A DNA stretch of 64,000 nt. Source: Cyanophora paradoxa CCMP329 (lineage: Eukaryota > Plantae > Glaucophyta). The stretch spans positions 248,001 to 312,000 of the forward strand of contig QPMI01000437.1 of NCBI GenBank assembly GCA_004431415.1. Reading direction: 5' to 3'. The stretch's first letter is position 1. Every line of letters begins with the position of its first letter. Below the pieces are notes generated by a model. It did no database searches, was not told where the DNA came from, and saw only the letters and a program-made list of their open reading frames with translations. Position numbers and translations under genes: made by a program. This document shows, one piece after another, positions 22,276 through 56,900 of this stretch.

Positions 22276-24374
22276 TTGTTTTTGGAAAGTCTGCTGCATT
22301 CGTACACACTTGACAGCAGTCCCCCGCTCCTCGCCTATAGCTACCGGATACTGGGATGCTGACTGCAGGAGGAGATAGATGACAAGCTTAAGAGTGCTAC
22401 AGCTACTAGTCGTGTCGAGCTGGTGCTTTAATTAAATTTATAAATTAGCTGTAGTCTACCGAGTCGCCTCCAGAACATAATATGCGCCGGTCCTCCCGCG
22501 GTGAGCTTGGCATGGTGAGCTGCACGGTCCAAGATGCCCGCTTGATGGCTCGTAAAGCAAGGCCGTGGTGCGCTCTGCCCTATCTAATAGTGGAGGGGGT
22601 GCGGTGGGAGGAAGGGGTCCGCAGTGTCGTCGTGCCCGTCGTCACCGCCGCCGTTCGAAGTCCAGCTCCGACCAGCTTGGCGATCGCGAGACACCGTGCT
22701 CTGAGACCTGCGCCCTCTCCCCACCCATCGCCCCCCCCCCCTCCCCCTCCCCCCCCCCCCCCCCTCGGGCCCCTTCGAGGCTGGCTAGCCTTTGTATTTC
22801 AAGATGCCGTGCCCCGAGGGGTCGACATGGAGAAATTGATATGTACATGTGGCCGAGAGTCGCAGTGATGAGTTCAGAAGCTGGCGAGCGTGCTTGGATG
22901 GGCAGAGCAAGGTCGGGAGATGGGCCGGGCCAGTGGGGGAGATAGCGTCGTGGTGGATGCGGCGGCAGCCGCATATGGCGCATAGGTCTGGGAGGTAGTG
23001 GAGTATGCTGCGGGGCTTTCGAGGGTTGCGGGGCTTGGCGGGGTGCGGAGCTGTCGGCGTTAGCGGCGGTGGCGGCGGCCGGGGCAGCGGAGGCAGTTCT
23101 TCCAGTCGGGCTGGCTGCAGCTGGCGGCGGCGGAACGTTTTTCGGGTTTTTGAGGGAGCCTGAGCTGCAGGGATACGGGTGCTAGGTGGGCGCGCCGCGG
23201 CTGCCGCCATCGGTTTCCATTCGCCGGGTGCAAAGAATTTAAAGATGGAGTCCGCAGGAAGCCCTGGGCTGGGGTCCGGTGGGGGGCCAGAGGCGGCGCG
23301 CTTGCCGCGTTTCTGTCCTGGAGGTTTCCGCGGGGCCGGGACGTCTTTGCGTTTGCTGCTCGGCGCCTCTGACGTTGTTGTCCCTGGGCGACGTTTGGCG
23401 TTGGGGGCTGGGGTTGCATCTGCTCCCTCCGCTGTACGTTTGGAGCCAACTGGTGGGGGTCTGCCAGTGGGTGGTGGCGGGTGCTGCGGGGCGCCGTGCT
23501 CGTTTTTGGAGCGTTTGGTTGATGTGGGGGGCGCTGCAGGCGTGACCGCAGGTCGTTTCGCTGCGCGGGCTGGGGGCTGCGGCGGGTAGAGGATCCGGAG
23601 GGGTAGTTCGAGCTGGGTCATCGAGGACGTTGGCTGGGGGGGGCTAGGGTTACGGACTAGCTGGAATCCCACCCCTGCTGCGATGTCGAATTCGAAGCAG
23701 AGGCCCGTGGCCAGGTGGCGTAGGCACAGGCGGGTGGAGGCAAAGCTTGCTCCGCAGGTGTCGCAGCGAGGGCGTCGCGCTTCTAGTTTGTGAAGGCGGG
23801 CGCTGCGGCGGAGGGGCTGGTTATCCTGATGCTGAGCTGGGTGCTGACCGGGTTCCTTCGCTGGTTTCCTCCAGGTGAACGGCATCAACTCGGCTTCCAA
23901 GGCGGGAGCTGCCCCACCGATATATTCCGTAACCGTGACTTGCTGGCGTTCGAGCGAGGGGCATCGGGTAGTAGGGTTGAGAGGAATTGGTGCCGGGGAC
24001 GGCATGGTGGATGCCTTAGCGGGCGTCGGGGCCTGGGCCCGCTTAGTACGCTTTTTTCCTGACGTGATGCCGTGCTCCTGTTCCCAGGCAATGACTGCGT
24101 CGCAGCGAGTTTTCCAGATGGCGCGCGCGTGTTCGTCCGCCAGCTGTGCTAAGCCGTTCACTGCTTGTTGCGAGGCTGTGGCGAGGGCTCGGACCCCGAA
24201 CGCTCGGAGTAGGGCGTGGATGCCTTGCGGTGCAACAAGCTGGAAGAGAGCTCGGAATTCAAATTGGTGCAATAAGTCAGCGGCTTCGAGAGTTGCTAGT
24301 TTTTGGCCCAGTGGGCAATCTGGGCAATCCAAGGCGGCGATCGCGAGGAATGCTAACGTAATTTCTGAATACAC
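22276..24374 (-). mobile_element. 5'-truncated non-LTR retrotransposon (family A, copy 1); 529-aa ORF resembling the C-terminal part of a LINE ORF2 with Cys/His motifs
   Basis: ORF 22785-24374 contains AIWKTRC..WE, C2H2-like CDTCG..CLRH and CAICGC..HH. The A-rich 3' end is at ~22276-22283. The last ~900 bp match 50631-51522 in inverted orientation. No RT or endonuclease domain lies in the window. Confidence 0.72.
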
Positions 24375-24440
24375 AATGTGAATGGAACGTGTTGATGTTG
24401 ATTTTAAGGATCGGATTTCTTAATGTACGTATATGCGGAC

Positions 24441-25265: not shown

Positions 25266-28200
25266 CCTGCGCATACAGCACGAAGTCCAATCGAAGTCGA
25301 GGCGCGCGAGGAAGGAGCTCGGCGCCGCCGGCGTGCGCGAGCGCACCGATGCAGCGCGCGAACTGCGACGGGTCGACCTCGCCCTTCCGCAGGCCTAGGC
25401 CTAGGGCATCAAAGAGCCAGCGCTCGACCAACGCTCGATCCTGCGGCCTCGGCGCGGTTGGCGAGATCTAGAAACAAATTTTGGATATTTGCGACGTCAC
25501 CTCCGCTAACTGACGCCAGTCACTGAGTCCTCATGGAATCTCAGCTGCGAGCAGAAATTAAAAATTGCCATGGCCAGTCGGAAATATTCGAATGTAGGAG
25601 ATCGCGCGTTCAAAATGGGCGCAGCGCACATTGGCGACGAGCTCGAGCGTCTCGATCGGCCATCCACGCGCGGCCTGTGCACGCGTCGAAGTCCGCACTA
25701 GATCGAGGCGCCGGCGGAGGCAGCGGCGCCACCGCCGGCGCCGTGTGCACCGTACCTCTATAGCTAACTAGTAATCGCCGTGTGCACCGTCGTCAGTGCG
25801 CAGCAGCCCATGCATATGGCCAACGGCCTCGCGATCGAGCGTACACCCCCCCCTCGAGCTCCTCCCCCTTGTCGCCGCTGCTGCGCGCCGAGCCGCCGCG
25901 ACTCCGAGGCTCACGACCGACAGCAAGGGCGGGGCGGCCGCAGGTCTAGGCCTAGGCCCGGGCCTTCGATCTAGAAGGGGACGTCGAAGTCCGGCCCGCC
26001 GCCGTCCCTCTCGGCCTTCGCGGTGGCCTTCAGATTAACAATGCAACTCGCGATCGGCGATATTCTCGTGTGTGAGAGCTTTGCAAAGTTCACGATTTGT
26101 GACTGCCCCGCCCCATATGCATGACAGCAACTTGGCAAGGCCCGGGCCTATTCAATTAAATTTAGAAGGGTACGTCGAAGTCGGGCCCGCCGCCGCCGTC
26201 GCCGTCGTCGCGGAACATGGAGAGGGCCACCGCAAAGGCCGAGACGGCGAGCGAGATCAGGGAGCGGAAGAGCGCGAAGTCCATCCGCATCCCCACCTGA
26301 CGCGGTCCGGATCGATCAGTTCTTGCGGAAGGTCCTATAGAACAGAGATCGAGGCAACAATTTTTCTAGCAGTCAACTTTCTATGAGTCAGATCTAGATC
26401 TTAGATAAAGAGATCTTATATATAAAGACGTTCATTCTAGCGGTTCTCAGAAGGCACACGAACCACCTCGACGGGGCGGAGCCGGTCCTCCATGTCGAGC
26501 GTCGCGAGCGCCAGGTCCAGGCTCCGCTCGCAGGCGCACCCGGGCTCCCCCGCCCCGCACAGCGCGCACGGGCCGGGGCCTGGCCTTGCCGGGGCCGAGG
26601 CCCGCGGAGCCTTGAAGGAGTAGCTCGGGCCAAGGCCGAGGACCGCGGCCGGGGCGGCGGCGCCGCCGCCCGGCATGGAGGAGCGCTGCCGCAGGGAGGC
26701 GGACGACTCGTCGGGGGGCGAGGGCGAGGGCGAGGGCGGCGGGGCGGGCCGCGCGTGCAGGGGCGACTGGAGCCTCCCCTCCTCGATCCGCGTCTGAGGC
26801 GTCTGAGTCGTTGCGGGGGCGGGGGGGGGGGAGCGGGGGGAGCGGGGGGAGGGTGGGAGGGGCGGGGGGGAAGGGATGCGGGGGGGAGCAACCTGCCTTT
26901 ATCTGGAGCACGATGTACTGGTGCTCTGTACATGTGGAGAGATTGTTCGCCTGCGCCCAGAAGTCACTATAGCTAAGATCTCGTAGACATCGAAGAATAA
27001 ATTCATTTCAGCGTCTCGTCTAATCTAGAGCGGACAATAGCGGACAAGAACGTTGACGTTTAACGGACCTTGGCGCCGTAGAAGATGCAGACGAGGAGGG
27101 AGCCGCCGAAGAGGGCGAGGTCGTAGGCGATGTAGACGTAGACGAAGGGCGGCACGGGCGCCGATGCCGCCGCGCTCATCTGCGAGAGCAGCGTCTGGGG
27201 GAGGGCAAAAGGCGGGGAGGTCAGCAAGGAAGGAAGGAAGGGCACGGGAGCCCCTTCGGCACGTGGCTCTAGTTCTAGATTGGAGCTTTTAGACCCCAGG
27301 AAAGTCTTGAAGAAGTCCTTTCGAGACTCTAACCGTCCTAGCACAGCCCATCAAGATCAAATTCATGTCGTGGCCGACGCCGGCACCTTGTAGATGAGGA
27401 AGGCGATCTGGCCGGCGAGCACGACGGCGAAGCTCGAGATGAAGAACTGCCCGCGAAGATGAAATGAGAACATGGATCCGGAGCTAGAGGAATCTCTCTC
27501 TAAATATATACTATATGTGCGGACCTGGATGCGGAGGTGGAAGGAGCGGCCGACGTCGGAGAGCCACTGGCGGGCGCGGAGCCAGGCGATGGGCGCCCCC
27601 GCCGCCCGCAGGTCCAGCGAGAGAGGCGCGGGGCCGCTGGGGGTGCACGCCCCCGCCCCGGCCACCTGCGAGGGTGGGCGGGCCTCGGTCTTAGGAAATC
27701 CGCACAGAAAGTCTCGCGGACTCTCATGAAGCGGTTCATGATCATGAAGCCTTTCAAACTCCTAAGAAAGCTTATAAGCTTATCTGGATTTATGACTCCT
27801 AGGAATTCTAATCTCTCAAACAGAGCGCCCACCTGCGAGAAGGAGCAGGGGATGACCGCGCGCCCCGCGCAGAGGAGCCGCCCCGCCGCCTCGAGCCACC
27901 GGAAGCGCCGGTAGTAGTCCGTCGCCGCCGCGAACATAAAGGCAAGGATGAAGGCGCTGGGGGGGATGGGATGGGAGGGGGTACACGTCAGGGAAGGGGT
28001 GGGGTGGGGTGGGGTACGTGGTTATCTATTTATAGAAAGGGCGCACTGCATAATGAGGTACTGAATGACGAGGACGGACACAGTGAAGGCGGAGAGGGCG
28101 GGCCTGCTGAACGCCAACGCCCGCTGCAGCGGCCCGGCCCCCGTCCCCGTCGGACCCGGATCAAACTGGACTTGGAGGAATCGAAGAAAGAAAGCTCGCC

Positions 28201-28349
28201 TGGTCCGCAAAGAAGTAAGGGATGGCGCAGTGGAGGGCGGCCGCGAGGGCCTTTGGGACTTCCAGAAGCCGGAGGAGCACAATCCGGCGCGTCGCCCCGG
28301 GCTGAAGAGGCGCGGATCAAATTTAAATCGGGCGGGGCGGGGCGGGGCG
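25266..28349 (+). repeat. Segmental duplication, copy 1 (direct repeat of 53739-57003)
   Basis: Near-identical for ~3.1 kb. Matching ORFs, e.g. 25533/54012, 25796/54269, 27060/55512. More diverged toward the right end. Confidence 0.95.
26162..28330 (-). pseudogene. 5'-truncated duplicate of the PHTF/GRL-like membrane protein gene
   Basis: Contains only the 3' exons of the gene at 54629-58604. Homology stops in an intron at ~28349. Confidence 0.8.
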
Positions 28350-31990: not shown

Positions 31991-32225
31991 GGCCTAGGGA
32001 GAGGGGGGGCGGGCCCGCTGCGGAGGGGTTTTTAAGAGAAGGAAGCAAGGAAAGTATTTAATTAGTACCGGCATGCATCTTAGTTCTTTGGTTGATCGCG
32101 TTGCGCCGTGAAATGGCTTGCTTGTCTGTTCAGCTGCTGTGTGGCCAATTGGCCGCACGCCACAAAGAGCGATTGGATTAGTGCTGCGAGCAAGTTAGGC
32201 GGTTTATATAGCTTCAAAAGAATCG

Positions 32226-32290
32226 CACGTAGAACATTGATACATGTGCCGTGGTGTATCAATGCGACGTCCACTTTTGCAAAAACAAAA
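32226..32290 (+). mobile_element. 65-bp extremely 5'-truncated retroposed insertion (family B 3' end) with a 17-bp target-site duplication
   Basis: Flanked by tagcttcaaaaGaatcg (32209-32225) and tagcttcaaaaTaatcg (32291-32307). Ends in caaaaacaaaa. The same sequence is at 33414-33477. Confidence 0.85.
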
Positions 32291-32439
32291 TAGCTTCAAA
32301 ATAATCGAGAGAGGCTTCGCGTGTAGCTAATATAGATTCCTCATGCTGTATACAAGCTCTAGCTACCTCGGCTTGTATTCTAGCTACCTCGGCTGCGTAT
32401 TCTATAGCTAGCTACCTCGGCTGCGTATATATATTCTTC

Positions 32440-33477
32440 CTCTGCCGCCGTCACGCCTCCAGTTGCCGTTGTAGCATGCCAGACCTGCGGGACGCGCCGG
32501 GGGTGAGGGGCGGCGCGCCCGCCGCTTCGCCCCCCGCCCGGCGAACGACGTACCTCCCTGCAGCGGTGCTCGGCGCTTGGCGCCATGCGGGCCGGAGCTC
32601 GAGCCCGCGGCGGCGACGGGACGCCTGCTGAGCCCGTCGCGCGTCAGCCCGGCCTCCGATCCGGCGCCCCCGACCCGGTCTGGAGTCTGGACCGGGCCGG
32701 CCGGCTGGAGGGGCGGGGGGGAGGGGTACGCGCCTCGGAGCTGGCGACGCGAGGTCCCCGCAGGGAGAGCTAGCAGCCGCGGCCGCCGTCACGCCTCCAC
32801 TGGGCCAGTTGCCGTCGTAGCATGCCAGACCTGCGGGACCGTCGGACGCGCCGGGGCTCGGGGGCCCGGGGTGAGGGCGAAGCGTAATTCGATTCCCTGG
32901 TACCGAAGTACCATATATATACACGTACCATATACCGTCTGACAGCGTCTGTGGCCCAGTGGGTTAGACTGTGGGGCCCCGCCGCCCCGGCCGACTCCGG
33001 ATCCCGCGCGCGTTGTAAAGCCGCGTGTAATATTAATGTTGCGCCGCGGATACACTGTCGTCATACACTGTGATACACACTGTGACAGTTGTGCGACCCT
33101 TACGTATACGGTAGGACTCGTAGGAGGCGCCACCGCCGCGCCAGCGCTAGCCGCCTCGAGCTCCAGCCTGGCAGGCTCCGCCACTGGACCGCCAGGGCCG
33201 CCGGCGCCAGGCGGCGTCATCTCGAACTTGGAACAGGGCTCATGAGGGATGGAGGAGTTGATCAAGGGGTGGGCGCGCGGGTCTGGTTACGGCTATCACC
33301 GAAAACCATGGCTCCCCCACTCAGGCGAACCTCCCATATTGAGCGACCCATGGCCGGCACCTAGCTAGCATCTTCAGCTAGACAGATGACCGGTCGGAAG
33401 GGCACGTCGACGTCACGTAGAACATTGATACATGTGCCGTGGTGTATCAATGCGACGTCCACTTTTGCAAAACAAAA
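32440..33477 (+). mobile_element. Longer degenerate copy of retroelement family B
   Basis: The 3' 64 bp match 32226-32290, including the stem-loop and A-tail. There is an internal duplication (32444-32510 vs 32783-32880) and weak similarity to families A and C. No TSD was found and the 5' limit is approximate. Confidence 0.55.
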
Positions 33478-33491
33478 GTCAGCTCGAACTT

Positions 33492-33570
33492 GGAAGTACC
33501 TGTAAAAAAACAGGAAGTACCTGTAAAAAAACCAGGAAGTACCTGAAAAAATACAGGAAGTACCTGTACA
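33492..33570. repeat. ~21-bp tandem repeat ggaagtacctg+A-run, 4 copies; one inverted copy at ~46922-46940
   Basis: Directly visible. Resembles DNA-transposon subterminal repeats. Confidence 0.75.
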
Positions 33571-34061
33571 AGAAACAGAGACTCGCGAGTCGCGACGCCG
33601 GCGCCGGACGCGCTCTCAGAGTCTGTTTGCCAAGTTGCGCATGCCAGCGCTAGCTATAGCGCTAGCGGCTAGCCTAGTAGCCTGCGGCCCGGCCGCCGGG
33701 CCTTGGGGGCTCAATGGGGAGTCATAAGTTACTTACTACTAGGCTACTAATTATAAGTTAGCGGCGACTTGGCGCCGCAAATTGCCTGCAATGCACTGCG
33801 GCACTGCGGCACAGCGCATGCGGGCCTGCGGCAGCCTGCAGCAGCAGCTCACTGACTCAGTGAGTCAGTGAGTCATGATCAGCGAGTCTCATCAGTCTCT
33901 CAGATCTAGATCTAGAGTCTGCGCGACAACATTAACAACACTGTGAGAGCGCTCATGATCAGCGGCTAGCTATCCGCTGCGCACCGGTACCGTGAGTCCG
34001 TGTGTATACGTACAGCCTGGCAGCGCTATAGCTAGTTACGGTACAGCAGCAGCCTGGCAGC

Positions 34062-38117: not shown

Positions 38118-38345
38118 CTTAATTACCGCGGTACCAAAATTACCGCGCCAAAAGTTTGTAAAAACGCGGTAATTTGGTACCGCGGTAATTACCTGCTGAG
38201 AAGTCTTTTTTTTGATGAATTACCGGCCACAGTCTCTAGACACTGCTGAGAAGTCGCCCCATACACATTACCCCCCAAAATAACCGCCTCATAGAAACCT
38301 TCAATTTTAAAACGCGGTAATTTGGTACGTATACCGCGGTAATTT
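38118..38345. mobile_element. Cluster of direct and inverted (A)TTACCGCG motifs; DNA-transposon end or MITE-like; related inverted copy at 46497-46725
   Basis: taccgcggtaccaaa(a)ttaccgcgcc..tttgtaaaaac.cggtaatttggtaccgcggtaa is shared in reverse complement between the two sites. Confidence 0.6.
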
Positions 38346-41245: not shown

Positions 41246-42542
41246 GGGGAGGGGGCGGGTCGGACGGAAGCGGAGGGGGAGGAGAAAAGCGAGGTAGAGC
41301 TGCTGGTGCAGAAAAGCAAGGCACAGCTGCTGGTCCGGACCGCAGAAAAGCGAGGCAGAGCTGCTGGTCCGGACCGCATCACAGTCCGACAGTCCGACAG
41401 TCACAGAGCTCAAATGGGCCCCAAAATTCTTAAGCTTCATGCACCCTCAGGGCCTCGAGCTCCACTTGGCAATCGCAACCTCAAAACTCGAGCTCGCGAT
41501 TAAGAAATATTGGCCGCGCGCGGATCCAGTCTCCACGACATGCATCAGTGACCGTGCACGTCAGCCTATTATGAGCTGGAGGATTGCGCCCCTTCGTTTT
41601 GATTTTTTTCGGACAGACTCAAGCTTGGTATCGGTTCGGTTCGGCCCGATTAAACTATGGGGAGCGATTGGCAAGAGACCGACGCGCTGAACACGTGCTA
41701 GTACGCATCTTAATGCATGTCTAATGCTCAGTCTCTCGCGGACGCGGTACAAAAGTTTCCTAGATGTATGGCCATAAAAAGGCGACGAGGAAAAGGTCAG
41801 TTTCGCGGCGAGCTAGCCGAGCTAGCAGTGCGATCGACCGGCGTCTTATTGCTCCAGCGGTCGAGCCCGGGAAGGGAAGATTGGGGGAGCGGGGGGGCTT
41901 GGGCGGGGGGGCCTGTCGAGCGCTGTCCGACAGCGCTGTCGAGGACTGAAGAGGGGGCCGGGGAGCAGCGACCTCCGAGGCCAACTTTCGCGCGGCGAGG
42001 TTCTGGCGGGAGACCAAAATGTTTCAAGTTTTTCATCTCGGCTGATCTAAAATGCACTTCGTAATTCCTACGTGCCCGGTCTCGCGCAAGTCACTCGCTG
42101 TGCTCCGCTTTATTTAATTTCGGCTGGACTGGTATGGCAAATGTTTCGGAGCGCGTATTATAAGATACGTATATACGTGTGTGTATATACACACACGTAT
42201 ATTCGGAGGCAAATGTTTCGGAGCGCGGATTATAAGATGTATTATAAGATCGAGGGGCCTTCGGCCCGCCCCCGCCCGCTCCCTCCGCCCCCGGGCCCGC
42301 CCGCTCCGCCCGCCCCCGCCCCGGGACCCGTCCCTTTCGGCATCACATGATCATGCCGCCGAACCTCGGAGATCTAGATCGCGCATAGTTCTGACCCAGC
42401 TGCAGGGCCGTGACGTCGCATAGTCTAGGCCTAGGTTTCGCGCTAGAGCTTGAATGCGCGATGTCGGACTCAAGCTTGGTAAATTTTTCGGAGCGCGTAT
42501 TATAAGATACGTATATATATATATATATATACAAGACGGGCG

Positions 42543-44716: not shown

Positions 44717-44953
44717 ATATACAAGACGGGCGTCAGCGCTAGCGGCAGTAGGCCCGATTACGAGCCTTCGGGATCGTCCTTTACAGAGGGAATTCGAAAA
44801 TTATTATGATCAGGACCCATGGCATGTGCATTTCGATTCTAGATCTGCGGCCGCGGCGAGTCGCAATTAGAACTTCGGAACAGCGTTCCCATTCAAGCAC
44901 TACGCGTACGTGCAATTGACATTGCGTACCATGTATACGTAGATCAAAGCGGC

Positions 44954-46040
44954 TTAAGCATCCTCGACGTAGAGAGTGGCCTGGCTGGCCTCTGCAGCGA
45001 TGTCGGCGAGCTCCGCGTCAAAGTCGGCGTCGATGTCGTCGTCGGCGAACAAGAACCCGTCCATATCCTCCTCTGGCATGGCCTACTCGCGATCGGATCG
45101 GGATTCGAAATCAGGTGCGAGTCATTCGCACGGACGCGATATATCTTGATTGCGACTGGCGAGCTATAGCTGTATAGCTACAGCAAGCCGCTGAGATTCT
45201 AGATCTGCATGCGCACCTGGGTCTCCGAGTCCAGCTGTAAGGCAGTACTTGCTTGGTTCAGCTTGTACTTCTCGAAGCCGCTGCGCATATGCATGCAGAT
45301 TAATATATATTCAGATCTAGATCTTGTCATTGAACTGCGGGGAGAGAATCGAATTCTGAGAGAATCACACACGCACTAGTCGTTGAACTGCGGAGAAAAC
45401 GAGCGGGAAGAAGCAGTGTACATGTATCAAGGCAACTGTCACGAATATATATATATATATATATATATTGGGAAGCTCACGAATCCTTTCGACAGTTCCC
45501 AGCAGGTATCAATCAACTTGTTTGGCTGGTGTGGGGCATTGGTGAGTTTCAGGATGTAGCCATTCTCGCACGATGTTTTTGTCCCGTTTGGCAGTGTCTT
45601 TGGCTTGCAGAGCTCTGCGCAACAACGCTAGCATTAGTATACGCGAACCAGACGTCTCTGAAACAAGTTCGGGAGAACGCACCTATTGATTCCGTGGTAC
45701 TATATTCGAAGCACATGCTTGAGAGAGAAGTCTTCATTATGTTGGGGAGCGTCCACCACTTTCCATGTGGACTTGACCCAATGGTTACGTCGAAAAGCTT
45801 TCCCTGGCACTGCGCCCTGTCAAGCGGCCGCGGGCTGCAAAGTTAACGGCGACGAACGAAAACTCGACTCACGTCGGCGTTCTCGAAAAATTGGACTACA
45901 GATAGCCCGTTGTTGTCCGTTACGTCAGAAACACATTTGGCGTCGTATTTAGGCTTCATGACAGCTCCCCCCTGGTAGGTATATAGGACGTTCTTCACAT
46001 ACTTTTCCGGGTTTTGGAGCGCATATTGAGCCATCCTGGA
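44954..46040 (-). CDS. Unknown Cys-containing protein, paralogue L (5' end not resolved)
   Basis: Exons: ..VQFFENAD | CQGKLF..KWWTLPNIMKTSLSSMCFEYSTTESI | ELCKPKTLPNGTKTSCENGYILKLTN..IDTCWELSKGF | FNDY (11-nt microexon) | GFEKYKLNQASTALQLDSETQ | LYSYSSPVAIKIYR | AMPEED..YVEDA*. All are phase-compatible. Confidence 0.7.
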
Positions 46041-47428
46041 CCTGCAGCTGTGCGCGCAGAAATGTAGGCACCCGTCAGCTGCAGCACAAGTTGCGCATCG
46101 ATATCGATGTTATGATTAGCGACTCGGCGCAGGTTTCTTAAGCTTCCGATGTCAGCGCACGCATATGCATGTGCGCACCTGCCGTTGAAAGCTCAGCGGC
46201 TGCACTGCAGCTGACCCGCCTGCTGTGAAGGCTGCAGCTACCGGTGCCGCAGACTGGCCAGTGGTCACTACTAGGCTAGTCACTACGATACTACAAGGCT
46301 ATGATATTGGACCTCACTGGGCGCAGCCCTAGTCGTGAGTCTCGTGAGTCGTGATCATCCCATGCCATATGCATGATGCATGATTTCGATGATCATGAGT
46401 CGTGGCTCGTACGTGATCGTGCCACGCGCGCCGCACGGCGAGTCGTGAATCGTGAATCGTGACTCGACGGTGAGTCGGACTACTGGAGAACTAGAAATAT
46501 TTAGTACCGCCGGGCACTAAATTACCGCGGCATAAATTACCGCGTTTTAAAACCCGGCCTGCCATAGAACAAAATACCGCGGTATCAATTAAATTACCGC
46601 GTTTTAAAAAACTTATAGGGGGTACTGTATATGGAGCAACTTAGCAGCTGGTTTTTACCGCGGTACCAAATTACCGTGTTTTTACAAATTCTCGGCGCGG
46701 TAATTTGGTACCGCGGTACTAGTAATGTGTTCTACGGTACTAGTGGGCTGCATGTTTATAGTACTAAAAAGTTTTTTGGCTATTTATATTTATAGCGCTA
46801 GCATGGCGAGCTTTTCGAACATTAGTACTATTTCGCGTTAAGTAGTACTAGTAGGCTAGCCTAGTAGTAGCCTAGTAGTAGCCTACCATCACCTCTTTGG
46901 AGTAGGCTGCGAGTCTGTGTATTTTTGGACAGGTACTTCCGACATGATCATAAGCACCGACAGCGGCGCCGGCTAGCCGGGCTACTACTAGCCTACTAGG
47001 CTAGCCTAGTACTACTCAGTGACTGTAGGAATCACAGTAGGATTGCTTTTTTAGCCGATGCTTTAAATTGCCGTATATTGCCGAGAGGCCGCATGCAATC
47101 GGCAATTTTAAGACACGGTAGGGCCAAACAGCCGTTTTTGTTTGGCTCTGACATTGGCTCAATAGAAATTCAGAGTTTCGGCAAAATATCGCCATGGCAA
47201 CTTGGCAATGCCGGTTTTGCCAAGTTGGTCCAATTCGGCAATTTAACTAGTCGAGTACGCGGCAATCATTGAATGATCATGAGTCCCCCAATTGCAAGTT
47301 TGCAACTTGGCATTGTTGGCAATGACACGCTGTGTCAGCCTGTGTGTCAGTGTGACACGCCGGCACTAGTACTAGTACTGCCGCGGCAGCATGCAGTAGG
47401 ACTGTAGGAGTCTGTTACCGTCTGTAAA

Positions 47429-47671
47429 CTGTAAAACATGCAATATCCAGCGTCACGTTATTTCGGCAAAACCCGAAAAATGCGCCGAAATTGTGGTTCG
47501 TCAGCATCATATTTTCGGTAACACAGCCAGTCCGCCTAGGCGGCGGGTACATTGTTCCCTCTTCGGGCGAATTCTGCCATACATCTGCACAATTCTGGCA
47601 GATTCAAATATTCGGCGTCGCGAGGCTTAACGCCGAATATTAAGTGCCGCCGGAGATTTCATGTTTTACAG
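47429..47671. mobile_element. MITE-like element with imperfect ~20-bp TIRs
   Basis: ctgtaaaacatgcaatatcc ... ggagatttcatgttttacag. Non-coding interior with repeated ttcggc/gccgaa motifs. No clear TSD. Confidence 0.5.
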
Positions 47672-48398
47672 TATACGTACTGACTCTGCACTGAGTCTGC
47701 AGCCAGTACTACGGTAGGACCCTACCGTATAATACAATAATATGACGGGCACTTTACTATTTCGGTACCAAATTATGTCGCTTCGGACGCGAAACAACGA
47801 CATAATTTGGGACCATCATAGTAGGGCACGCTCAGTGGTACCCCATCAAATTTACCGTCCCATACAAGCCTGAAAATTATATGACGACATGATTTGGGGC
47901 CGTCAAGAGAAGGGTCAAGTTGTTTTACGACATATATGCATATAAATATCATAGTAAATTTTAAATATGTCCGCAATATTTTTGTGTTACACGGCCGTGG
48001 GGCGGCGTGGCCCATTGGGCCCGTGACGTCGACCGCGGCCGGTGGTCCGTACTACTCCGTAGTAGCTTACTATAGTAGAGTCCGTACGCGTAGTCGCAGA
48101 CTCGCCGAGTCGCACAGACTCAGAGACTCGCAGCACTCACTGAGTCAGTGACTGTCGCACTGTCACAGGCTGTCGCAGTGCTGAGCCTCGGAGAGTCCTA
48201 GTCACCGAGTAACTTAGTAACTTAGTAACGGGCCGGATCATCGGATCGTTGGAAGTCGATCGATATATATCGTGGCCGGACTGCAGCTGAGCAGCCTGTC
48301 ATTTTTGAAGGTGCGCGCAGAAAAGCCGTTCATGATCAGCGCCAGCGCGGCCGCGGCTAGCGCTGCCGCGCGCAGTGCCGCGCACTGCATGTGAGCAG

Positions 48399-49361
48399 CA
48401 TCTCAGTGTCTGAATACGGGTGCCAATGCCCAGAGTTTTCACGAATGGCCTCCGCCAGATTCTTCACGGATGCCGACGTGAGTTATCCCAACTTTTCTTG
48501 TTCAGTCAGCGCGTGGGACTCTTGCTCAGTCAGCGCGCGCAGCAAAAAGGGACGCAGGAGGTTTACCAGGATCAGGAGAAAGGATGGACCGATCTCAGCG
48601 ATTCTCTCAAGAAAAACGTGAGCTCCTTCTGTGCAGGCGCGAAGGACAAAATCAGTGCGTTAGCGCCCGCCGTCATCATGCGTGCAAGCTGTTGTCTGAT
48701 CCGGATCCGTCGATTCCGCAGCTCTTTGCAAACCTGCCTACGTCGGCAAACGCACCATAGTTGATGGTCGGGGCAACCAGACGGTGGAGGATATCTGGAC
48801 AGCTTGCGAGGACGGGATAACCAAGGCTCTTGAAAACACACGTACAGGGTGGCTGTCGCAAAAGTGCGAAAACCTGACAGGCTCGGTGCGCACCCCGAGC
48901 TCGAGGGCCCTGGGGCCTTCACAGCTCGCGATTGACGATCTCCCTGATACAAATGCATGCCATTTAATCCAGGACAACGATTCGTACGTCTTCGTTTACA
49001 TTTGCCCATCTTGAGCCACTTGTTCATCGTTCAAATCACTGAATTGTCTCAGGTACGTAAAGTTCAAGATTGAACAAATTCAGCTGCTGGACTCGGAGAC
49101 CCAGGTGCAGATCTAGAATCTCAGCGGCTTGCTGTAGCTATACAGCTATAGCTCGCCAGTCGCAATCAAGATATATCGCGTCCGTGCGAATGACTCGCAC
49201 CTGATTTCGAATCCCGATCCGATCGCGAGTAGGCCATGCCAGAGGAGGATATGGACGGGTTCTTGTTCGCCGACGACGACATCGACGCCGACTTTGACGC
49301 GGAGCTCGCCGACATCGCTGCAGAGGCCAGCCAGGCCACTCTCTACGTCGAGGATGCTTAA
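48399..49361 (+). CDS. Unknown Cys-containing protein, paralogue R (5' end not resolved)
   Basis: Exons: ..ARFFTDAD | QKGTQ..KGWTDLSDSLKKNVSSFCAGAKDKI | TLCKPAY..WTACEDGITKALEN..LSQKCENLTGS | LAIDD..QDNDS | YVKFKIEQIQLLDSETQ, then the same last two exons as paralogue L. Stop at 49359-49361. Confidence 0.7.
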
Positions 49362-50039
49362 GCCGCTTTGATCTACGTATACATGGTACGCAATGTCAAT
49401 TGCACGTACGCGTAGTGCTTGAATGGGAACGCTGTTCCGAAGTTCTAATTGCGACTCGCCGCGGCCGCAGATCTAGAATCGAAATGCACATGCCATGGGT
49501 CCTGATCATAATAATTTTCGAATTCCCTCTGTAAAGGACGATCCCGAAGGCTCGTAATCGGGCCTACTGCCGCTGACGCCCGTCTTGTATATAAATATAT
49601 ATATATATATACGTATATACGTATCTTATAATACGCGCTCCGAAAAATTTACCAAGCTTGAGTCCGACATCGCGCATTCAAGCTCTAGCGCGAAACCTAG
49701 GCCTAGACTATGCGATGTCACGGCCCTGCAGCTGGGTCAGAACTATGCGCGATCTAGATCTCCGAGGCTCGGCGGCATGATCATGTGATGCCGAAAGGGA
49801 CGGGTCCCGGGGCGGGGGCGGGCCCCGCACGGGGGGCGGGCGGAGCGGGCGGGCCCGGGGGCGGAGGGAGCGGGCGGGGGCGGGCCGAAGGCCCCTCGAG
49901 GGGCGAAGGCCTAGGGCCAGGGGCGCGGCGATCTTGCATAGAGTACAGGGATCTTACATTTATAACTCATTTCATTGGCTAGAGCTCTAGAGCGGCCTCG
50001 GCGGGGCGGGGCGGGACGGGCCGGGGCGGGGCGGGGGGC

Positions 50040-52315
50040 ACCGTCGGCGTCGAGGCTGAAGCACTGCTCGGCGGCCCCCGAGATGGCGTTCGCCGTCTGC
50101 GCGGGCGGACGGGCGGGGGGGGGGGGGGAGGGGGGGGGGAGGGCGGGCGGGGTGCCGGCTAGCGCCCGATCGGAATTTTATCTCGGTCTCGGCCTCTCGA
50201 CCGACTCGATCGGACCATTGTAAAATATCTTGGGCGGGGCGGGGCGGGGCGGGACGGAGCGGGGCGAGACGTTGGATCTTTTAGCTCCTTTTATCCAGGG
50301 CCCTTAGCTCCCTTTATCTATCTTGGACGGGGCGGAGCGGGGCGGGGCGGGGCGGGACGGGGCGCGCGGGGCGGGGCGGCTCGGACCATGAAGACGATGG
50401 GGATGCGGCGGCGGGGCCGCGCCCCCGCCTCGGCCTCCGGATCCAGCCCCCGAATCTTCCGCGTCGCCTCCCGCCCGTCCATCTGCAGAGGCGGTTTGAA
50501 ATTCCGAGTTCGATCCACCAGGGCCCTTGGCACCCTTTATCTATCTTAAATTAACCGGAACCTTCAGCTCTTTTTATCTCAAATGTAAAAGAGCCCTTAG
50601 CACTAGAGACCTTAGCTCCTATGATCTTAAGCAGCCGCGGCGCGCCCACCTAGCACGCGTACCCCCGCAGATCAGCTGCAGGCTCCCTCGAAACCCCGGA
50701 AAACGCTCCGCCGGCGCCAGCCAGCCCGCCTGGAAGAACTGCCTCCGCTGCCCCGGCCGCCGCCACCGCCGCTAAAGCCGACAGCTCCGCCCCCTCCCAA
50801 GCCGAGCAACCCCCGAAAGCCCCGCAGTATACTCCACTATCTCCCAGACCTGTGCGCCATATGTGGCTGCCGCCGCATCCACCACGACGCTATCTCCCCC
50901 ACTGGCCCGGCCCGTCTCCCGACTTTGCTCTGCCCATCCAAGTACGCCCGCCAGCTTCTGAGCTCGTCATTGCGTCTCTCAGCCACATATCACTTTCTCC
51001 ATGTCGACCCCTCGGGACACGGCATCCTGAAGTACAAAGGCTAGCGAGCAAGCCTCTAGGAGGCCTGGGGGGGGGGGGGGGGGGGGGGGGAGGGGGGGGC
51101 GGGGATGGGAGGGGAGGGGGCGCAGGTCTCGGAGCCACGGCGTCTCGCCAAGCTGGTCGGAGCTGGACTTCGAACGGCGGCGGCGACGACGGGTACGACG
51201 ACACTGCGGACCTCTTCCTCCTACTGCACCTCCTCCATTAGTAAATAGAGCCGAGCGCACCACGGCCACGCATTAGGAGACATCAAGCGGGCATCTTGGA
51301 CCGTGCAGCTCACCGTGCCAGGCTCACTGCTAGAGGACCGGCGCATATTATGTTCTGGAGGTGACTCGGTAGACTACAGCTAAAGCCCCAGCTCGACACG
51401 ACTAGTAGCTGTAGCACTCTTGTCATCTATCTCCTCCTGCAGTCAGCATCCCAGTATCCGGTAGGCGAGGAGCGGGGGACTGTTGTCAAGTGTGTACGAA
51501 TGCAACAGACTTTCCAAAAAAATTAGCTCCTATGATCTTAAATTTACTGGATCCCTTGGCTCCTTTAATTTTATCATCGAATCTTGCGTGGCGCACGACG
51601 GGCATCTATCTCCTGGTCCATGAGGACGGGGCGCACGAGGGCGAAGCCACGTCTTATCCTAGACCCCTCTATCTTAGATTCGCTGGGTCCCTTAGCTCCT
51701 TTTATCTTTGATTCTCATAGGGCGCACGAGGGGCATTTCTTGGTCCATAAGGACGAGGCCGAAGGCGGCGGGGTCGGCGGCGTAGGCGCGCAGGCCCTCG
51801 AGCCCGTTGCCCGCCACCGTCACTTTGTGGCCCGCAGCCTCCAGCATCCTCCGCGCCACCAGCACGCTGCGGGGCGGGCCGCGGGGCTCAGTTGAGGCTT
51901 CTAAGACGTCCAAGACTTCTAAGACTTCTTAAATATCAGATAGCCGTCGGATACGAGCGCCCTGCTAGGGTGCACTGGCCATGGGTGGCGTTGTCCTCTA
52001 AAAGACTAATTATAAGACTTCTAGACATCTAGGCTAAGATCGATAGAAATCAGGTAGATAGCTAAGATTCGGGATCAATTCGCACTTTGTGGCGTTGTCC
52101 TCGACGAGGAGGACTGAGACGGGCTCGCGGGCGCGCGGCGGGGCCGCCGATCGCGAGCGCCGGCCCCGCACCGCCGCCTCCGCCGCCTCCGCCTCGGGCT
52201 CGGGCTCTGCCTTGGACCCGGCCCCGGCCTCGCCGGGCGCCGGGGCGCCCCGCGCCAGGTCCCGCTGGACGATCGCGAGGGCCTGCCAGGCTGCAGCGCC
52301 CGCTGCATCTCCCTG
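50040..52315 (-). pseudogene. Response-regulator receiver-domain exons of a hybrid histidine kinase; frameshifted and lacking upstream exons
   Basis: VSVLLVEDNAT, VARRMLEAAGHKVTVAGNGLEGL..LVLMDQEMP, MDGREATRKIR..IPIVFM, TANAI..EQCF. Frameshift near 52285. A retroelement sits in one intron. Confidence 0.75.
50631..51522 (+). mobile_element. 5'-truncated non-LTR retrotransposon (family A, copy 2) with a perfect 19-bp TSD
   Basis: ttagctcctatgatcttaa at 50612-50630 and 51523-51541. A7 tail at 51516-51522. Homologous to 22276-23205 (inverted). Confidence 0.92.
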
Positions 52316-52766: not shown

Positions 52767-53935
52767 CTAAAAGATGATGGTGCTGTCTGCAGAGGGCTCG
52801 CCGTAAACATAGGCGATCCAGGCCTTCTGGAGGGGGTCGGGGCGGAAGTCGAACATGGGGGTGAGCGGCAGCCAGCGGCGCCGGTCGTGAAGAGAGCCGT
52901 CCTGCGAGAGCATGGTGAGGCGGCCCGCCGGCGCCGCCTCGAGCGCCCGCAGAGCCACGCGGCTGGCGCGCTGCTCGCTCCCGCCGCGCATCTGGTAGAC
53001 AAGGTCTTGAATTTCGATATCCGCGAGGCCGGCGTCACGGAGGCGCTTGAGGACTCCCATGTGGAGGTCCTCGATCGCAGGCCTGCCGTGGCAATCATGA
53101 ACAGAGGTCAGCTATGGGCGGTCCACTTGAATGAATTTTCGCGCACCCGACAAAGCGAACGACGAAGCGATGCTGCCGCGCAGCCGCGAGTGCTTCGACG
53201 GTCGCTAAAGCGAAGGCGACGGCTTGCTCGCGCGTGGGGGGGAAGCCAGCCCGGTCGGCCGCGGGGAGCTCGCGGACGACGATGAGCAGCGGCGTCTCAG
53301 CCGCTCCGAGCACGGACACGAGACCGCCGACGTCGGGGGCCGCTCCAGACGGCCAGGTGGACGCGGCGTGCCGGTATCCGTCCGGCGGGAGCACACACGC
53401 GACGGCGCCCGCACAAAGCCGGCCGCGCGCGAGGCCGAGCCAGGAGGCGGCCGCGCGCGAGGCCGAGCCAGGAGGCCAATTTCAAGTTTGTAAAAAGTCG
53501 CGAAACCAGCTCACTTGGACACACAAACGCGCGCTTCGCGGATCGCCAACTGAAGGCTGGGCACGCATTGCTGTGTTCGAACTCCCCTGCGTGGCGGTGA
53601 ATACGTGCGTTAGCTGCTGCGTTTTTGCGAGCGTGCGCGCGGCTCGATGGAAACTGCACGAACTCGAGCGCTGCGACCGTGTTGCCGGACATGACGAAAC
53701 AAGCTCTGGCGCCAGCAGATGTGTTCACGGGCTCCGTCCCTGCGCATACAGCACGAAGTCCAATCGAAGTCGAGGCGCGCGAGGAAGGAGCTCGGCGCCG
53801 CCGGCGTGCGCGAGCGCACCGATGCAGCGCGCGAACTGCGACGGGTCGACCTCGCCCTTCCGCAGGCCTAGGCCTAGGGCATCAAAGAGCCAGCGCTCGA
53901 CCAACGCTCGATCCTGCGGCCTCGGCGCGGTTGGC
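52767..53935 (-). CDS. Unknown protein gene (exon limits uncertain)
   Basis: Protein-like exons ERWLFDALGLGLRKGEVD.., VGGLVSVLGAAETPLLIVVRELP.. and EDLHMGVLKRLRDAGL..KAWIAYVYGEPSADSTIIF*. No family recognised. Confidence 0.4.
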
Positions 53936-56900
53936 GAGATCTAGAAACAAATTTTGGATATTTGCGACGTCATGATCACCTCCGCTAACTGACGCCAGTC
54001 ACTGAGTCCTCATGGAATCTCAGCTGCGAGCAGAAATTAAAAATTGCCAGTCGGAAATATTCGAATGTAGGAGATCGCGCGTTCAAAATGGGCGCAGCGC
54101 ACATTGGCGACGAGCTCGAGCGTCTCGATCGGCCATCCACGCGCGGCCTGTGCACGCGTCGAAGTCCGCACTAGATCGAGGCGCCGGCGGAGGCAGCGGC
54201 GCCACCGCCGGCGCCGTGTGCACCGTACCTCTATAGCTAACTAGTAATCGCCTTGTGCACCGTCGTCAGTGCGCAGCAGCCCATGCATATGGCCAACGGC
54301 CTCGCGATCGAGCGTACACCCCCCCCTCGAGCTCCTCCCCCTTGTCGCCGCTGCTGCGCGCCGAGCCGCCGCGACTCCGAGGCTCACGACCGACAGCAAG
54401 GGCGGGGCGGCCGCAGGTCTAGGCCTAGGCCCGGGCCTTCGATCTAGAAGGGGACGTCGAAGTCCGGCCCGCCGCCGTCCCTCTCGGCCTTCGCGGTGGC
54501 CTTCAGATTAACAATGCAACTCGCGATCGGCGATATTCTCGTGTGTGAGAGCTTTGCAAAGTTCGCGATTTGTGACTGCCCCGCCCCATGACAGCAACTT
54601 GGCAAGGCCCGGGCCTATTCAATTAAATTTAGAAGGGTACGTCGAAGTCGGGCCCGCCGCCGCCGTCGCCGTCGTCGCGGAACATGGAGAGGGCCACCGC
54701 AAAGGCCGAGACGGCGAGCGAGATCAGGGAGCGGAAGAGCGCGAAGTCCATCCGCATCCCCACCTGACGCGGTCCGGATCGATCAGTTCTTGCGGAAGGT
54801 CCTATAGAACAGAGATCGAGGCAACAATTTTTCTAGCAGTCAACTTTCTATGAGTCAGATCTAGATCTTAGATAAAGAGATCTTATATATAAAGACGTTC
54901 ATTCTAGCGGTTCTCAGAAGGCACACGCACCACCTCGACGGGGCGGAGCCGGTCCTCCATGTCGAGCGTCGCGAGCGCCAGGTCCAGGCTCCGCTCGCAG
55001 GCGCACCCGGGCTCCCCCGCCCCGCACAGCGCGCACGGGCCGGGGCCCGGCCTTGCCGGGGCCGAGGCCCGCGGAGCCTTGAAGGAGTAGCTCGGGCCAA
55101 GGCCGAGGACCGCGGCCGGGGCGGCGGCGCCGCCGCCCGGCATGGAGGAGCGCTGCCGCAGGGAGGCGGACGACTCGGGGGCGAGGGCGAGGCGAGGGCG
55201 GCGGGGCGGGCCGCGCGTGCAGGGGCGACTGGAGCCTCCCCTCCTCGATCCGCGTCTGAGGCGTCTGAGTCGTTGCGGGGCGGGGGGGGGGAGCGGGGGA
55301 GCGGGGGAGGGTGGGAGGGGCGGGGGGGAAGGGATGCGGGGGGGAGCAACCTGCCTTTATCTGGAGCACGATGTACTGGTGCTCTGTGGAGAGATTGTTC
55401 GCCTGCGCCCAGAAGTCACTATAGCTAAGATCTCGTAGACATCGAAGAATAAATTCATTTCAGCGTCTCGTCTAATCTAGAGCGGACAAGAGCGGACAAG
55501 AACGTTAACGTTTAACGGACCTTGGCGCCGTAGAAGATGCAGACGAGGAGGGAGCCGCCGAAGAGGGCGAGGTCGTAGGCGATGTAGACGTAGACGAAGG
55601 GCGGCACGGGCGCCGATGCCGCCGCGCTCATCTGCGAGAGCAGCGTCTGGGGGAGGGCAAAAGGCGGGGAGGTCAGCAAGGAAGGAAGGAAGGACACGGG
55701 AGCCCCTTCGGCACGTGGCTCTAGTTCTAGATTGGAGCTTTTAGACCCCAGGAAAGTCTTGAAGAAGTCCTTTCGAGACTCTAACCGTCCTAGCACAACC
55801 CATCAAGATCAAATTCATGTCGTGGCCGACGCCGGCACCTTGTAGATGAGGAAGGCGATCTGGCCGGCGAGCACGACGGCGAAGCTCGAGATGAAGAACT
55901 GCCCGCGAAGATGAAATGAGAACATGGATCCGGAGCTAGAGGAATCTCTCTCTAAATATATAATATATGTGCGGACCTGGATGCGGAGGTGGAAGGAGCG
56001 GCCGACGTCGGAGAGCCACTGGCGGGCGCGGAGCCAGGCGATGGGCGCCCCCGCCGCCCGCAGGTCCAACGAGAGCGGCGCGGGGCCGGGGCCGCTGGGG
56101 GCGCACGGCCCCGCGCCCGCCACCTGCGCCCCCGGCAGTTGCAAGGGCAAACTCCTTAAGACTCCTAAGAAAGACTCCTAAGAAAGACTCTATGACTCTT
56201 AGGCCGCCCGCAGGTCCAGCGAGAGCGGCGCGGGGCCCCCGGGGCCGGGGCCGGGGCCGGGGCCCCCGGGCGCGCAAGCCCCCGCCCCCGCCGCCTGCAG
56301 GGGAGGGCCTCGGTCTAACGAAATCCGCACAGAAAGTCTCGCAGACTCTCATGAATGAAGCGGCTCATGAAGCGGCAGTCGCAAGGGCAGACTCCATAGA
56401 GAGCCTCTAAGACTCGTAAGAAAGCATCTAAGCTTATCTGGATCTATGACTCGGGGCTCCTAGGAATAATCCTCCTAATCTCTCAAACAGAGCGCCCACC
56501 TGAGAGAAGGAGCAGGGGATGACGGCGCGCCCCGCGCAGAGGAGCCGCCCCGCCGCCTCGAGCCACCGGAATCGCCGGTAGTAGTCCGTCGCCGCCGCGA
56601 ACATAAAGGCCAGGATGAAGGCGCTGGGGGGATGGGATTGGAGGGGGGTACACGTTAAAAAGGGGTGGGGTGGGGGTACGTGGTCATTTATTTATAGAAA
56701 GGGCGCACTGCATAATGAGGTACTGGATAAGGAGGACGGAGACAGTGAAGGCGGAGAGGGCGGGCCTGCTGAACGCCAGCGCCCGCTGCGGCGGCCCGGC
56801 CCCCGTCCCCGTCGGACCAGGATCAAATTGGACTTCGAAAAAATCGAAGAAAGAAAGCTCGCCTGGTCGGCGAAGAAGTAAGGGATGGCGCAGTGGAGGG

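Follow-up and report, generated by a model that had tools for sequence, protein, structure and literature searches.

The 64-kb stretch of DNA analysed here (the window), probably from Cyanophora paradoxa, is crowded with short insertions in which a trinucleotide X has become X-rc(X)-X, rc(X) being its reverse complement. These events are probably the excision footprints of one or two CACTA-like families of cut-and-paste DNA transposons, with 3-bp target-site duplications (TSDs) and C...G ends, that left through hairpins formed on the flanking DNA. We distinguished two classes: class A, the 6-bp insertion X-rc(X)-X, and class B, the 8-bp insertion X-C-rc(X)-G-X. The preliminary description of this DNA had reported the first, and the signature is stronger than was claimed. 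With mono- and dinucleotide runs removed, the window contains 320 9-mers of the form X-rc(X)-X against about 28 expected, whereas the control arrangements XXR (61 versus 41 expected) and XRR (64 versus 40) each reach only about 1.5-fold. The raw count is 391; Markov models of order 1, 3 and 5 predict 40, 58 and 129, respectively. The earlier proposal that any trinucleotide can serve as X also holds, since all 30 X/rc(X) pairs passing the filter are in use. Among them, CCC/GGG and AAA/TTT are under-represented, and TAA/TTA occurs at 1.1 times its background frequency.

A 3-nt X is a specific requirement of this excess. The enrichment is 10.7-fold for k = 3 and 1.9-fold for k = 2; the k = 4 form (14 versus 2.4 expected) consists chiefly of tandem palindromic tetramers and the k = 5 form has two cases, so that neither constitutes a real class. 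Equal frequencies for 2-, 4- and 5-nt X, which the preliminary description had named as evidence against its proposal, were therefore not found. Junctions keeping a prefix and a suffix of rc(X) whose lengths sum to 3 nt are enriched 11-fold and the remaining combinations about twofold, a stereotypy that fits joining by microhomology. TSD-only XX junctions are scarcely enriched in the window counts. The arrangement X-rc(X)-rc(X)-X, corresponding to overhangs joined without annealing, was also considered; it occurs six times against one expected, mostly in GC-rich repeats, and the signal is too weak to be used.

The second class is likewise discrete. X-C-rc(X)-G-X is found 76 times in the window against 3.8 expected, and the other 15 base pairs at the C/G positions stay near background. 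Half-forms, having just the left-hand C or just the right-hand G, number 53, compared with 52 for the mirror controls; mixed forms are thus not enriched. For an excision model this is a difficulty, as it calls either for two separate families of elements or for cleavage that is concerted between the two ends. The window counts contain no two-base CA...TG class. In the class-B event at 52283 the paralogue has a single X, so the pre-insertion state of this class is also X alone. The invariant C and G resemble the terminal bases of an element.

These properties bear on template switching or snap-back synthesis, in which synthesis during replication, or in end joining of the polymerase-theta type, briefly takes the opposite strand as template for a few bases and then switches back. 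Such processes do make short inverted repeats, and 8- and 10-bp palindromes are about twofold enriched here as well. However, they predict a spread of lengths, and the effect is restricted to 3 nt; a 3-base primer is too weak for the precision seen, and the constant C...G frame is not predicted. We consider this origin highly improbable.

Paralogous sequences within the window reveal the state before and after insertion. Repeat pairs were globally aligned with MAFFT, and the indels were also tallied by BLAST. The form X-rc(X)-X accounts for 12 of the 14 6-bp indels between paralogues in the MAFFT alignments and for 12 of 13 in the BLAST tally, which bears out the excess among 6-bp indels anticipated earlier. 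Over all sizes the BLAST tally contains 38 indels, 22 of them at least 3 bp long, and this form accounts for 12; TSD-only 3-bp indels are absent. The shorter copy carries X alone, not the hexamer X-rc(X), in all 12 6-bp cases and in one 8-bp case, and in 13 of 13 paralogue-private events the insert reverse-complements the flank beside it. All eleven insertions listed in the preliminary description are present as 9-mers, each with X alone in the other copy, and three further paralogue-private events were found (23115, 50673 and 52283; Table 1). The arms of the 507-bp inverted repeat (44717-45235 and 49086-49592) differ at just two places, both of which are such insertions. The two copies of retroelement A have six private events and none in common, fitting gains after the copies had formed. 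Beside these, a 17-bp insert at 22428 has no clean parsing into nested events.

Table 1. Coordinates of individual insertions and of event-rich regions in the window.
Feature	Class	Position	Sequence	Remarks
CTA-TAG-CTA	A	22335-22343		Retroelement A; other copy (~51464) has CTA only
AAG-CTT-AAG	A	22384-22392		Retroelement A; paralogue without it
CGA-TCG-CGA	A	22681-22689		Retroelement A; paralogue without it
TGT-ACA-TGT	A	22842-22850		Retroelement A; paralogue without it
CTG-CAG-CTG	A	23115-23123	CTGCAGCTG	Retroelement A; paralogue without it; new here
CCA-TGG-CCA	A	25568-25576		Duplicate at ~54047 without it
CAT-ATG-CAT	A	26114-26122		Duplicate at 54587 without it
TGT-ACA-TGT	A	26927-26935		Duplicate at 55385 without it
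Densest 8 kb of the window		32000-40000		82 class-A and 33 class-B events; 9.5% of sequence
CCA-C-TGG-G-CCA and GAC-C-GTC-G-GAC	B	within 32797-32847		Two events
Patch saturated with putative footprints		33600-34100		12 class-A and 13 class-B events; four nested rounds; 35% of 500 bp
AGC-GCT-AGC		44735-44743		One difference between inverted-repeat arms
GCA-TGC-GCA		45207-45215		Other difference between inverted-repeat arms
TGT-ACA-TGT		45417-45425		Copy without the 6 bp in 3 of 4 runs (X1, X6, X12; X17 has zero depth there)
CGG-CCG-CGG		45825-45833		Forms with and without the 6 bp in the same runs
TAA-C-TTA-G-TAA-C-TTA-G-TAA	B (double)	48210-48228		Runs also hold a copy one 8-bp unit shorter
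GAG-CTC-GAG		48897-48905		Forms with and without the 6 bp in the same runs
CAG-CTG-CAG	A	50673-50681	CAGCTGCAG	Second retroelement-A copy only; new here
CGA-TCG-CGA	A	52270-52278		Paralogous stretch at 40023 without it
CTG-C-CAG-G-CTG	B	52283-52293		Paralogous stretch at ~40030 without it
TCA-TGA-TCA	A	53970-53978		Duplicate at 25497 without it

The same comparisons could be read in the opposite direction, namely as the loss of older palindromic hexamer repeats by deletion or slippage, which would turn X-rc(X)-X into X by way of the 3-bp direct repeat. The X...X repeat could indeed allow precise loss, runs of the form X-rc(X)-X-rc(X)-X occur, and the number of units differs at 48210. Against this, the shorter copies hold only X and lack the repeated unit that slippage would need, the retroelement-A copies have none of their six events in common, and the origin of about 400 9- and 11-mers where about 40 are expected is left unexplained. 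Deletion is therefore very unlikely as the general explanation, and some reversion may well go on alongside insertion.

The events are also present in independent sequencing data. Contigs made with another assembler from four separate runs (X1, X6, X12 and X17) reproduce 41 events in 2.8 kb with zero differences. The same runs also hold copies without three of the 6-bp events and a copy shorter by one 8-bp unit. This argues against the earlier concern that the pattern might come from assembly. The runs holding this stretch may include the window's own assembly sample, which leaves an artefact of assembly, polishing or sequencing some room; nevertheless, the exact agreement across runs and assemblers, the alternative forms, and the many events that are common to old duplicates or nested in one another make such an origin practically negligible.

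An excision mechanism can be formulated that would yield both classes. The element would insert at nearly any trinucleotide X to give X-element-X, and on excision the transposase would cap both flanks as covalently closed hairpins, as in hAT, Transib/RAG and Mutator elements. If the host then opened the hairpins at least 3 nt from the tip, the left end would become ...X-rc(X) and the right one would start with rc(X)-X.... Since both flanks carry the same TSD, the palindromic overhangs would end in the same 3-mer; they could anneal through rc(X), and fill-in and ligation would produce X-rc(X)-X every time. In class B, the hairpin tip would also contain the terminal base of the element, a C at the left end and a G at the right end, and annealing would give X-C-rc(X)-G-X. 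Of the presumed element end, the first base is what class B allows us to infer. The preliminary description had already proposed insertion and excision through hairpinned flanks; with the 3-nt specificity, class B, and the target bias and the depletion in GC-rich DNA described below, this is the best explanation, although the window contains no occupied site, no such element and no transposase.

We searched the window for the element in several ways. Three kinds of inverted ends were sought in the 64 kb: perfectly matching 11-nt ends flanked by a 3-bp duplication, CAC...GTG ends at 12 or more of 14 matches with a 3-bp duplication, and any ends at 13 or more of 16 matches with a shifted-duplication control. 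All returned just GC-rich low-complexity pairs. End pairs starting with C number 73 with the duplication against 48 in the control, an unconvincing difference. No filled site was found in the 64-kb window or in the one read overlay, of 5.9 kb. Pfam searches of ten long open frames and then of 150 frames of at least 130 aa in the window gave no transposase or reverse transcriptase; the matches are RCC1, TPT, AAA_16 and similar host domains. Regarding individual candidates, the long inverted-end match at 44717-49592 belongs to the interior of a large palindrome and is no transposon; another insertion, which has a 16-bp duplication, accounts for its apparent AAA duplication. The 167-bp insertion at 56129 likewise represents no element but a tandem duplication. 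Lastly, the high-copy AT-rich block at 46470-47850 contains arrays of motifs and, flanked by TA, a MITE-like piece of 239 bp, none of which matches the expected C...G ends and 3-bp duplication.

A window without element or transposase, together with the extreme uniformity of the outcome, would fit repair that involves no transposon: a host nuclease, for example a domesticated transposase, would make 3-nt staggered breaks with hairpin-capped ends, and X-rc(X)-X would follow. However, the target would have to be duplicated and inverted with no integration step, and we know of no pathway that does this. Two discrete cutting modes would be needed as well, and the constant C and G of class B remain unexplained. 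We regard this possibility as unlikely and retain transposon excision as the preferred reading.

To place the putative element, we compared the events with known excision systems. CACTA/En-Spm (CMC) elements duplicate 3-bp targets of variable sequence and have ends of the type CACT(A/G), beginning with C and closing with G (PMC4423477; PMC6379663), and a 3-bp duplication with C...G ends is also what we deduce here. Of the superfamily's termini, 5'-CACT(A/G)...(C/T)AGTG-3', class B bears on the outermost C and G. These two features point to a CACTA/En-Spm-like element, and with no element seen in the window the attribution rests on them. CACTA footprints keep the duplicated target, as do the events here. 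However, plant CACTA footprints are sparse and varied, with several variants in a single plant (PMC6379663), whereas one junction type dominates each class here. PIF/Harbinger elements, with their TAA/TTA preference and precise excision, do not match, since TAA/TTA is hardly preferred here and bases are added. In mPing, a PIF/Harbinger element, the identical 3-bp duplication on both flanks leads to deterministic repair (PMC4561436), much as proposed here; however, mPing targets TAA/TTA and restores the original site, whereas here any trinucleotide is used and 6 or 8 bp are added.

The hairpin step has its closest parallels elsewhere. Flank hairpins have been demonstrated for Muta1, hAT and Transib/RAG (PMC5499845). 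Ac/Ds leaves footprints that repeat the flanking DNA in palindromic form, and repair of its hairpins is steered by microhomology (PMC4561436). Like hAT (Ac/Ds) footprints and the P-nucleotides of V(D)J joining, the events here add the reverse complement of the flank, consistent with off-tip hairpin opening and microhomology-guided joining (PMC4561436; PMC5499845). The differences are that hAT elements make 8-bp duplications and that known hairpin junctions vary in length, whereas the events here comprise exactly the 3-bp target, or the target and one element base on each side. A survey of rice (Oryza sativa versus O. glaberrima) likewise regards excision as producing small indels on the scale of the genome, but its footprints are heterogeneous, mostly with deletions and filler DNA, and 8 of 94 excisions were 'perfect' (PMC4423477). 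In contrast, the junctions here are so uniform that they can be counted by pattern, and excision would thus need unusually deterministic repair. We found no description of the signature in the open-access literature, in keeping with the earlier remark that it was not recognised as a known genome-wide one. To our knowledge, flank hairpins have never been demonstrated biochemically for CACTA elements, and cutting out and break repair have not been worked out biochemically in this superfamily.

Iterative removal strips about 400 events from the window, where about 40 such 9- and 11-mers are expected; this corresponds to one event per 160 bp or so and to 4% of the sequence. The events are nested and clustered in low-GC intergenic DNA, and their density falls with GC content (Spearman rho -0.56); the GC-rich DNA depleted of events is presumably coding. 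Such a distribution is typical of repeated insertion near genes. The target preference of class A is symmetric and weak, with C favoured over G at -1 (133 versus 69) and G over C at +1 (144 versus 75), each at P ~1e-5. On balance, we lean towards a putative 3-bp-TSD transposon system, possibly of two families, that has long been active in a glaucophyte-like genome, with hairpin excision and repair so deterministic that it leaves a countable genome-wide signature. Its scars would be the main source of indels of at least 3 bp, arise at about 5-8% of the rate of point substitution, amount in some intergenic patches to as much as one third of the sequence, and constantly supply new 6-bp palindromes by genes. 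If they are excision scars, the genome records hundreds of thousands of excisions of one kind and offers an in vivo view of 3-bp-TSD, probably CACTA-like, excision and break repair. The traffic of transposons, rather than their copies, could then make a sizeable share of non-coding DNA (4% in the window, 35% in patches) and place numerous new palindromic hexamers close to genes. In work on this genome, whether alignment, indel modelling, molecular clocks or gene prediction, each X-rc(X)-X or X-C-rc(X)-G-X should be scored as one event.

All eleven class A 9-mers (X-rc(X)-X, where X is any trinucleotide and rc(X) its reverse complement) listed in the preliminary description were located where they had been reported, and global alignment of the repeat pairs (see the table) gave a single X in the partner copy for each of these 6-bp insertions. 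The HK-exon event was likewise borne out by its paralogue. The same alignments yielded two further class A events, and an 8-bp insertion of a second form, X-C-rc(X)-G-X (class B), directly adjoins the HK-exon event; the paralogue lacks these 8 bp. Class A accounts for 12 of 14 (MAFFT) or 12 of 13 (BLAST) six-bp indels between paralogues, and for 12 of the 22 paralogue indels of at least 3 bp, among which no 3-bp indel consists of the target duplication only. Two class A insertions are the sole differences between the 507-bp arms of the inverted repeat (44717-45235 and 49086-49592).

The window contains 391 class A 9-mers, where Markov models of order 1, 3 and 5 predict 40, 58 and 129, respectively; when mono- and dinucleotide runs are left out, 320 remain and 28 are expected. 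As controls, X-X-rc(X) and X-rc(X)-rc(X) occur 61 and 64 times (about 40 expected for each), and plain triplet repeats (XXX) 152 times against 28 expected. Regarding unit length, 2-nt units in the same arrangement reach only 1.9 times expectation, 4-nt units give 14 cases against 2.4 expected, for the most part tandem palindromic tetramers, and 5-nt units give 2 cases in the window. The inverted-triplication effect is confined to 3-nt units; neither the lack of excess nor the equal frequency at other unit lengths that the preliminary description had named as contrary outcomes was found. The window also has 1864 6-bp palindromes against 1141 expected, an excess that nearly disappears (1259 against 1093) once palindromes belonging to X-rc(X)-X are discounted.

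The junctions were scanned with one base permitted on either flank of the middle triplet, in all 16 base combinations. X-C-rc(X)-G-X was found 76 times where 3.8 cases are expected; the remaining fifteen combinations lie near background. The half-forms X-C-rc(X)-X and X-rc(X)-G-X add up to 53 cases and the mirror controls (G left or C right) to 52; since the half-forms show no specific enrichment, classes A and B are discrete. Among junctions that join a prefix of rc(X) to a suffix of it, an 11-fold enrichment is seen only where the two lengths sum to exactly 3; every other combination is enriched about 2-fold, and isolated X-X duplications barely exceed expectation in footprint-rich regions. 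Template switching or snap-back synthesis would give a range of lengths, but the observed excess is 3-nt only; it also predicts no constant C...G, and is disfavoured. The asymmetric junction X-TA-rc(X)-X and its mirror X-rc(X)-TA-X form a minor class of about 21 cases, with about 1.7 expected, when pure (AT)n runs are left out; AT-dinucleotide slippage inside X-rc(X) could account for some of these cases but not for about a dozen of them. Short (CG)4-7 runs are also numerous, and (AT)n runs occur as well, though few. Both share the X-rc(X)-X form (X = CGC/GCG or ATA/TAT), and the footprint process may therefore seed these two self-complementary dinucleotide microsatellites; all such runs were excluded from the footprint counts.

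Repeated removal of the two patterns, nested up to five rounds deep, took out 321 and 82 events, compared with 36 and 3 in simulated sequence. The removed events account for 4.0% of the whole window, for 9.5% of 32-40 kb and for 35% of 33600-34100, and intact scars occur at about 1 per 160 bp in the window. Event density falls from 12.8/kb below 55% GC to 2.3/kb above 70% GC (rho -0.56), which fits selection against events in coding DNA, a preference for intergenic insertion, or both. Nearly every trinucleotide is usable as X, with CCC/GGG and AAA/TTT under-represented. The context of class A is weak and symmetric (C before, 133:69; G after, 144:75; P ~1e-5), and this bias is not present in class B.

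The stretch 44500-50400 was found in seventeen DNA sequencing runs from separate samples, and contigs assembled from four runs are identical to the window over 2.8 kb that contain 41 events. The absence from reads that the preliminary description had also named was thus not observed, and an assembly or sequencing artefact is excluded for practical purposes. The same runs hold copies without the 6 bp at three class A events, a copy one 8-bp unit shorter at a double class B event, and one further difference of another kind (5 bp). The copies lacking events are either alleles or paralogues; the published assembly was judged haploid (PMC6704402). The region with variant run copies probably has further paralogous copies elsewhere in the genome. 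Regarding age, the six events of the two retroelement A copies (86% identical) are all private, with none in common, and the 98%-identical segmental duplication has about 19 in common (16 of class A, 3 of class B) besides four private ones. Events thus build up over time and continue to appear. Slippage of pre-existing hexamer repeats, or their precise loss, may add polymorphism, but it is at odds with the private events of retroelement A and unable to generate about 400 motifs. Dividing the 12 private events by the 158 substitutions of the same alignments gives a rate of about 0.08 events per substitution; from the standing density (0.0057/bp) and the time that an intact 9-mer takes to decay, we infer an independent estimate of about 0.05. 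For three stretches the runs contain variant copies that differ by 1-3% and carry indels, and their depth is about double that of the exact copy.

The simplest account, which spells out the one in the preliminary description, is that these insertions are excision footprints of an element with a 3-nt stagger. The element would integrate to give X-element-X, and excision would leave closed hairpins on the two flanks. Each hairpin would be opened at least 3 nt from its tip, producing the overhangs ...X-rc(X) and rc(X)-X..., which would end in complementary triplets because both flanks carry the same duplicated X; annealing and fill-in would then give X-rc(X)-X. For class B, the hairpin-forming strand would be nicked one base inside the element and the tip would keep that base, so that this element would start with C and finish with G, and annealing would give X-C-rc(X)-G-X. 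The absence of mixed junctions points to two element families or to concerted cleavage at both ends. Every scar would supply two more copies of X and one rc(X) as new targets. Such a mechanism accounts for the restriction to 3 nt, the uniform junctions, the existence of two classes, the strand symmetry and the nesting. Flank hairpins have been demonstrated for Muta1, hAT and Transib/RAG (PMC5499845), and Ac/Ds footprints are palindromic copies of flanking DNA, with microhomology steering hairpin repair (PMC4561436). In mPing, identical 3-bp duplications lead to deterministic repair (PMC4561436); however, that repair restores the site, whereas repair here would add bases. CACTA elements are defined by CACT(A/G) ends and a 3-bp target of variable sequence (PMC4423477). 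Three separate searches of the window gave no credible element with inverted ends and a 3-bp duplication, and no transposase or reverse-transcriptase domain is encoded in any of its 150 open frames of at least 130 aa. A nuclease and hairpin pathway working free of any transposon agrees with the lack of occupied sites found in the window, but it leaves the C...G frame unexplained and is in our judgement unlikely; to our knowledge it has no precedent.

Palindromic excision footprints are textbook knowledge. What appears new is the uniformity of the scars, their two discrete classes, their density, and their share of indels and intergenic sequence. In rice, a genome-wide survey counted only 8 clean cases among 94 excisions, the majority having left deletions or filler DNA (PMC4423477), whereas the scars in the window are uniform. 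The preliminary description did not recognize a described genome-wide signature, and we likewise found none similar for Cyanophora or any other genome in the open-access full-text literature. The genome paper reports ~100 Mb, 67.6% GC and 11.5% 'unknown repeats', and leaves palindromes, footprints and DNA transposons unmentioned (Price et al. 2019, PMC6704402). The window has 64% GC, and contigs total 98-124 Mb per run. Open frames of at least 130 aa gave Pfam domains of RCC1 repeats, triose-phosphate transporter (TPT/UAA), AAA_16, TrAA12-like and DUF7623 only.

The arms of the large palindrome are 98-100% identical and surround 3.9 kb that comprise an AT-rich core (48% GC) and an inverted gene pair whose members have diverged. 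The 2,174-bp insert in the left arm, flanked by perfect 16-bp target duplications and ending in an A-rich tail, looks like a target-primed retroelement insertion. One region reaches run contig depths in the thousands, compared with about 60-70 for single-copy parts, and therefore holds high-copy repeats; its short-motif arrays, in both orientations, recall the subterminal transposase-binding repeats of DNA transposons, and no element ends were defined for them. A 239-bp piece is missing from other genomic copies, in which 46501 joins 46741 with four common bases (TAGT). With flanks read as TA, it has imperfect inverted-repeat ends (GTACCG...), which suggests a Stowaway/mariner-type MITE and not the sought 3-bp-duplication element. 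Lastly, copy 2 of the segmental duplication contains a (GGGGCC)n-like run and repeats 167 bp of the preceding segment in tandem; past ~27670 / 56128 the similarity of the copies drops from 98% to 86%.

Positions within the window of the repeats, events and other features discussed in the text
Feature	Position	Detail
Segmental duplication, aligned pair	25266-28349 / 53739-57012	
Retroelement A, aligned pair	22275-23204 / 50631-51523	inverted
Inverted-repeat arms, aligned pairs	42250-42531 / 49598-49899; 44717-45235 / 49086-49592	
Further class A event	23115	CTGCAGCTG
Further class A event	50673	CAGCTGCAG
HK-exon class A event	52270	paralogue 40023
Class B event	52283	CTG-C-CAG-G-CTG
Class A events lacking in some run copies	45417, 45825, 48897	
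Double class B event	48210	
Other run difference	46200	5 bp
Variant copies in runs	45180-45761, 48180-48507, 48582-49004	
X-TA-rc(X)-X examples	13343, 20402, 31892, 35945, 44629, 52755	
X-rc(X)-TA-X examples	5614, 24604, 45282, 46968, 49982	
(CG)4-7; (AT)n runs	2060, 6909, 6971, 7934, 20631, 21909, 38042, 61993; 42512, 45445, 49595	
Large palindrome	42250-49899	arms 42250-42531 + 44717-45235 vs 49086-49899
Insert in left arm (42527-44732)	42543-44716	target duplication ATATACAAGACGGGCG; tail TTTTGCAAAAA
Tandem array in insert	43255-44500	~27-bp period
Empty site of insert	49577-49592	right arm, single site copy
High-depth region	46470-47850	
Short-motif array	46500-46720	ATTACCGCGG-like
Short-motif array	47060-47650	TTCGGCAA-like
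239-bp piece	46502-46740	
Tandem duplication, copy 2	56129-56295	167 bp
ORF	39759-40496 (-)	sole database relative, EukProt protein tig00020660_g12560.t1
'Retroelement' open frames, e.g.	22788-24419 (-)	no recognisable reverse transcriptase
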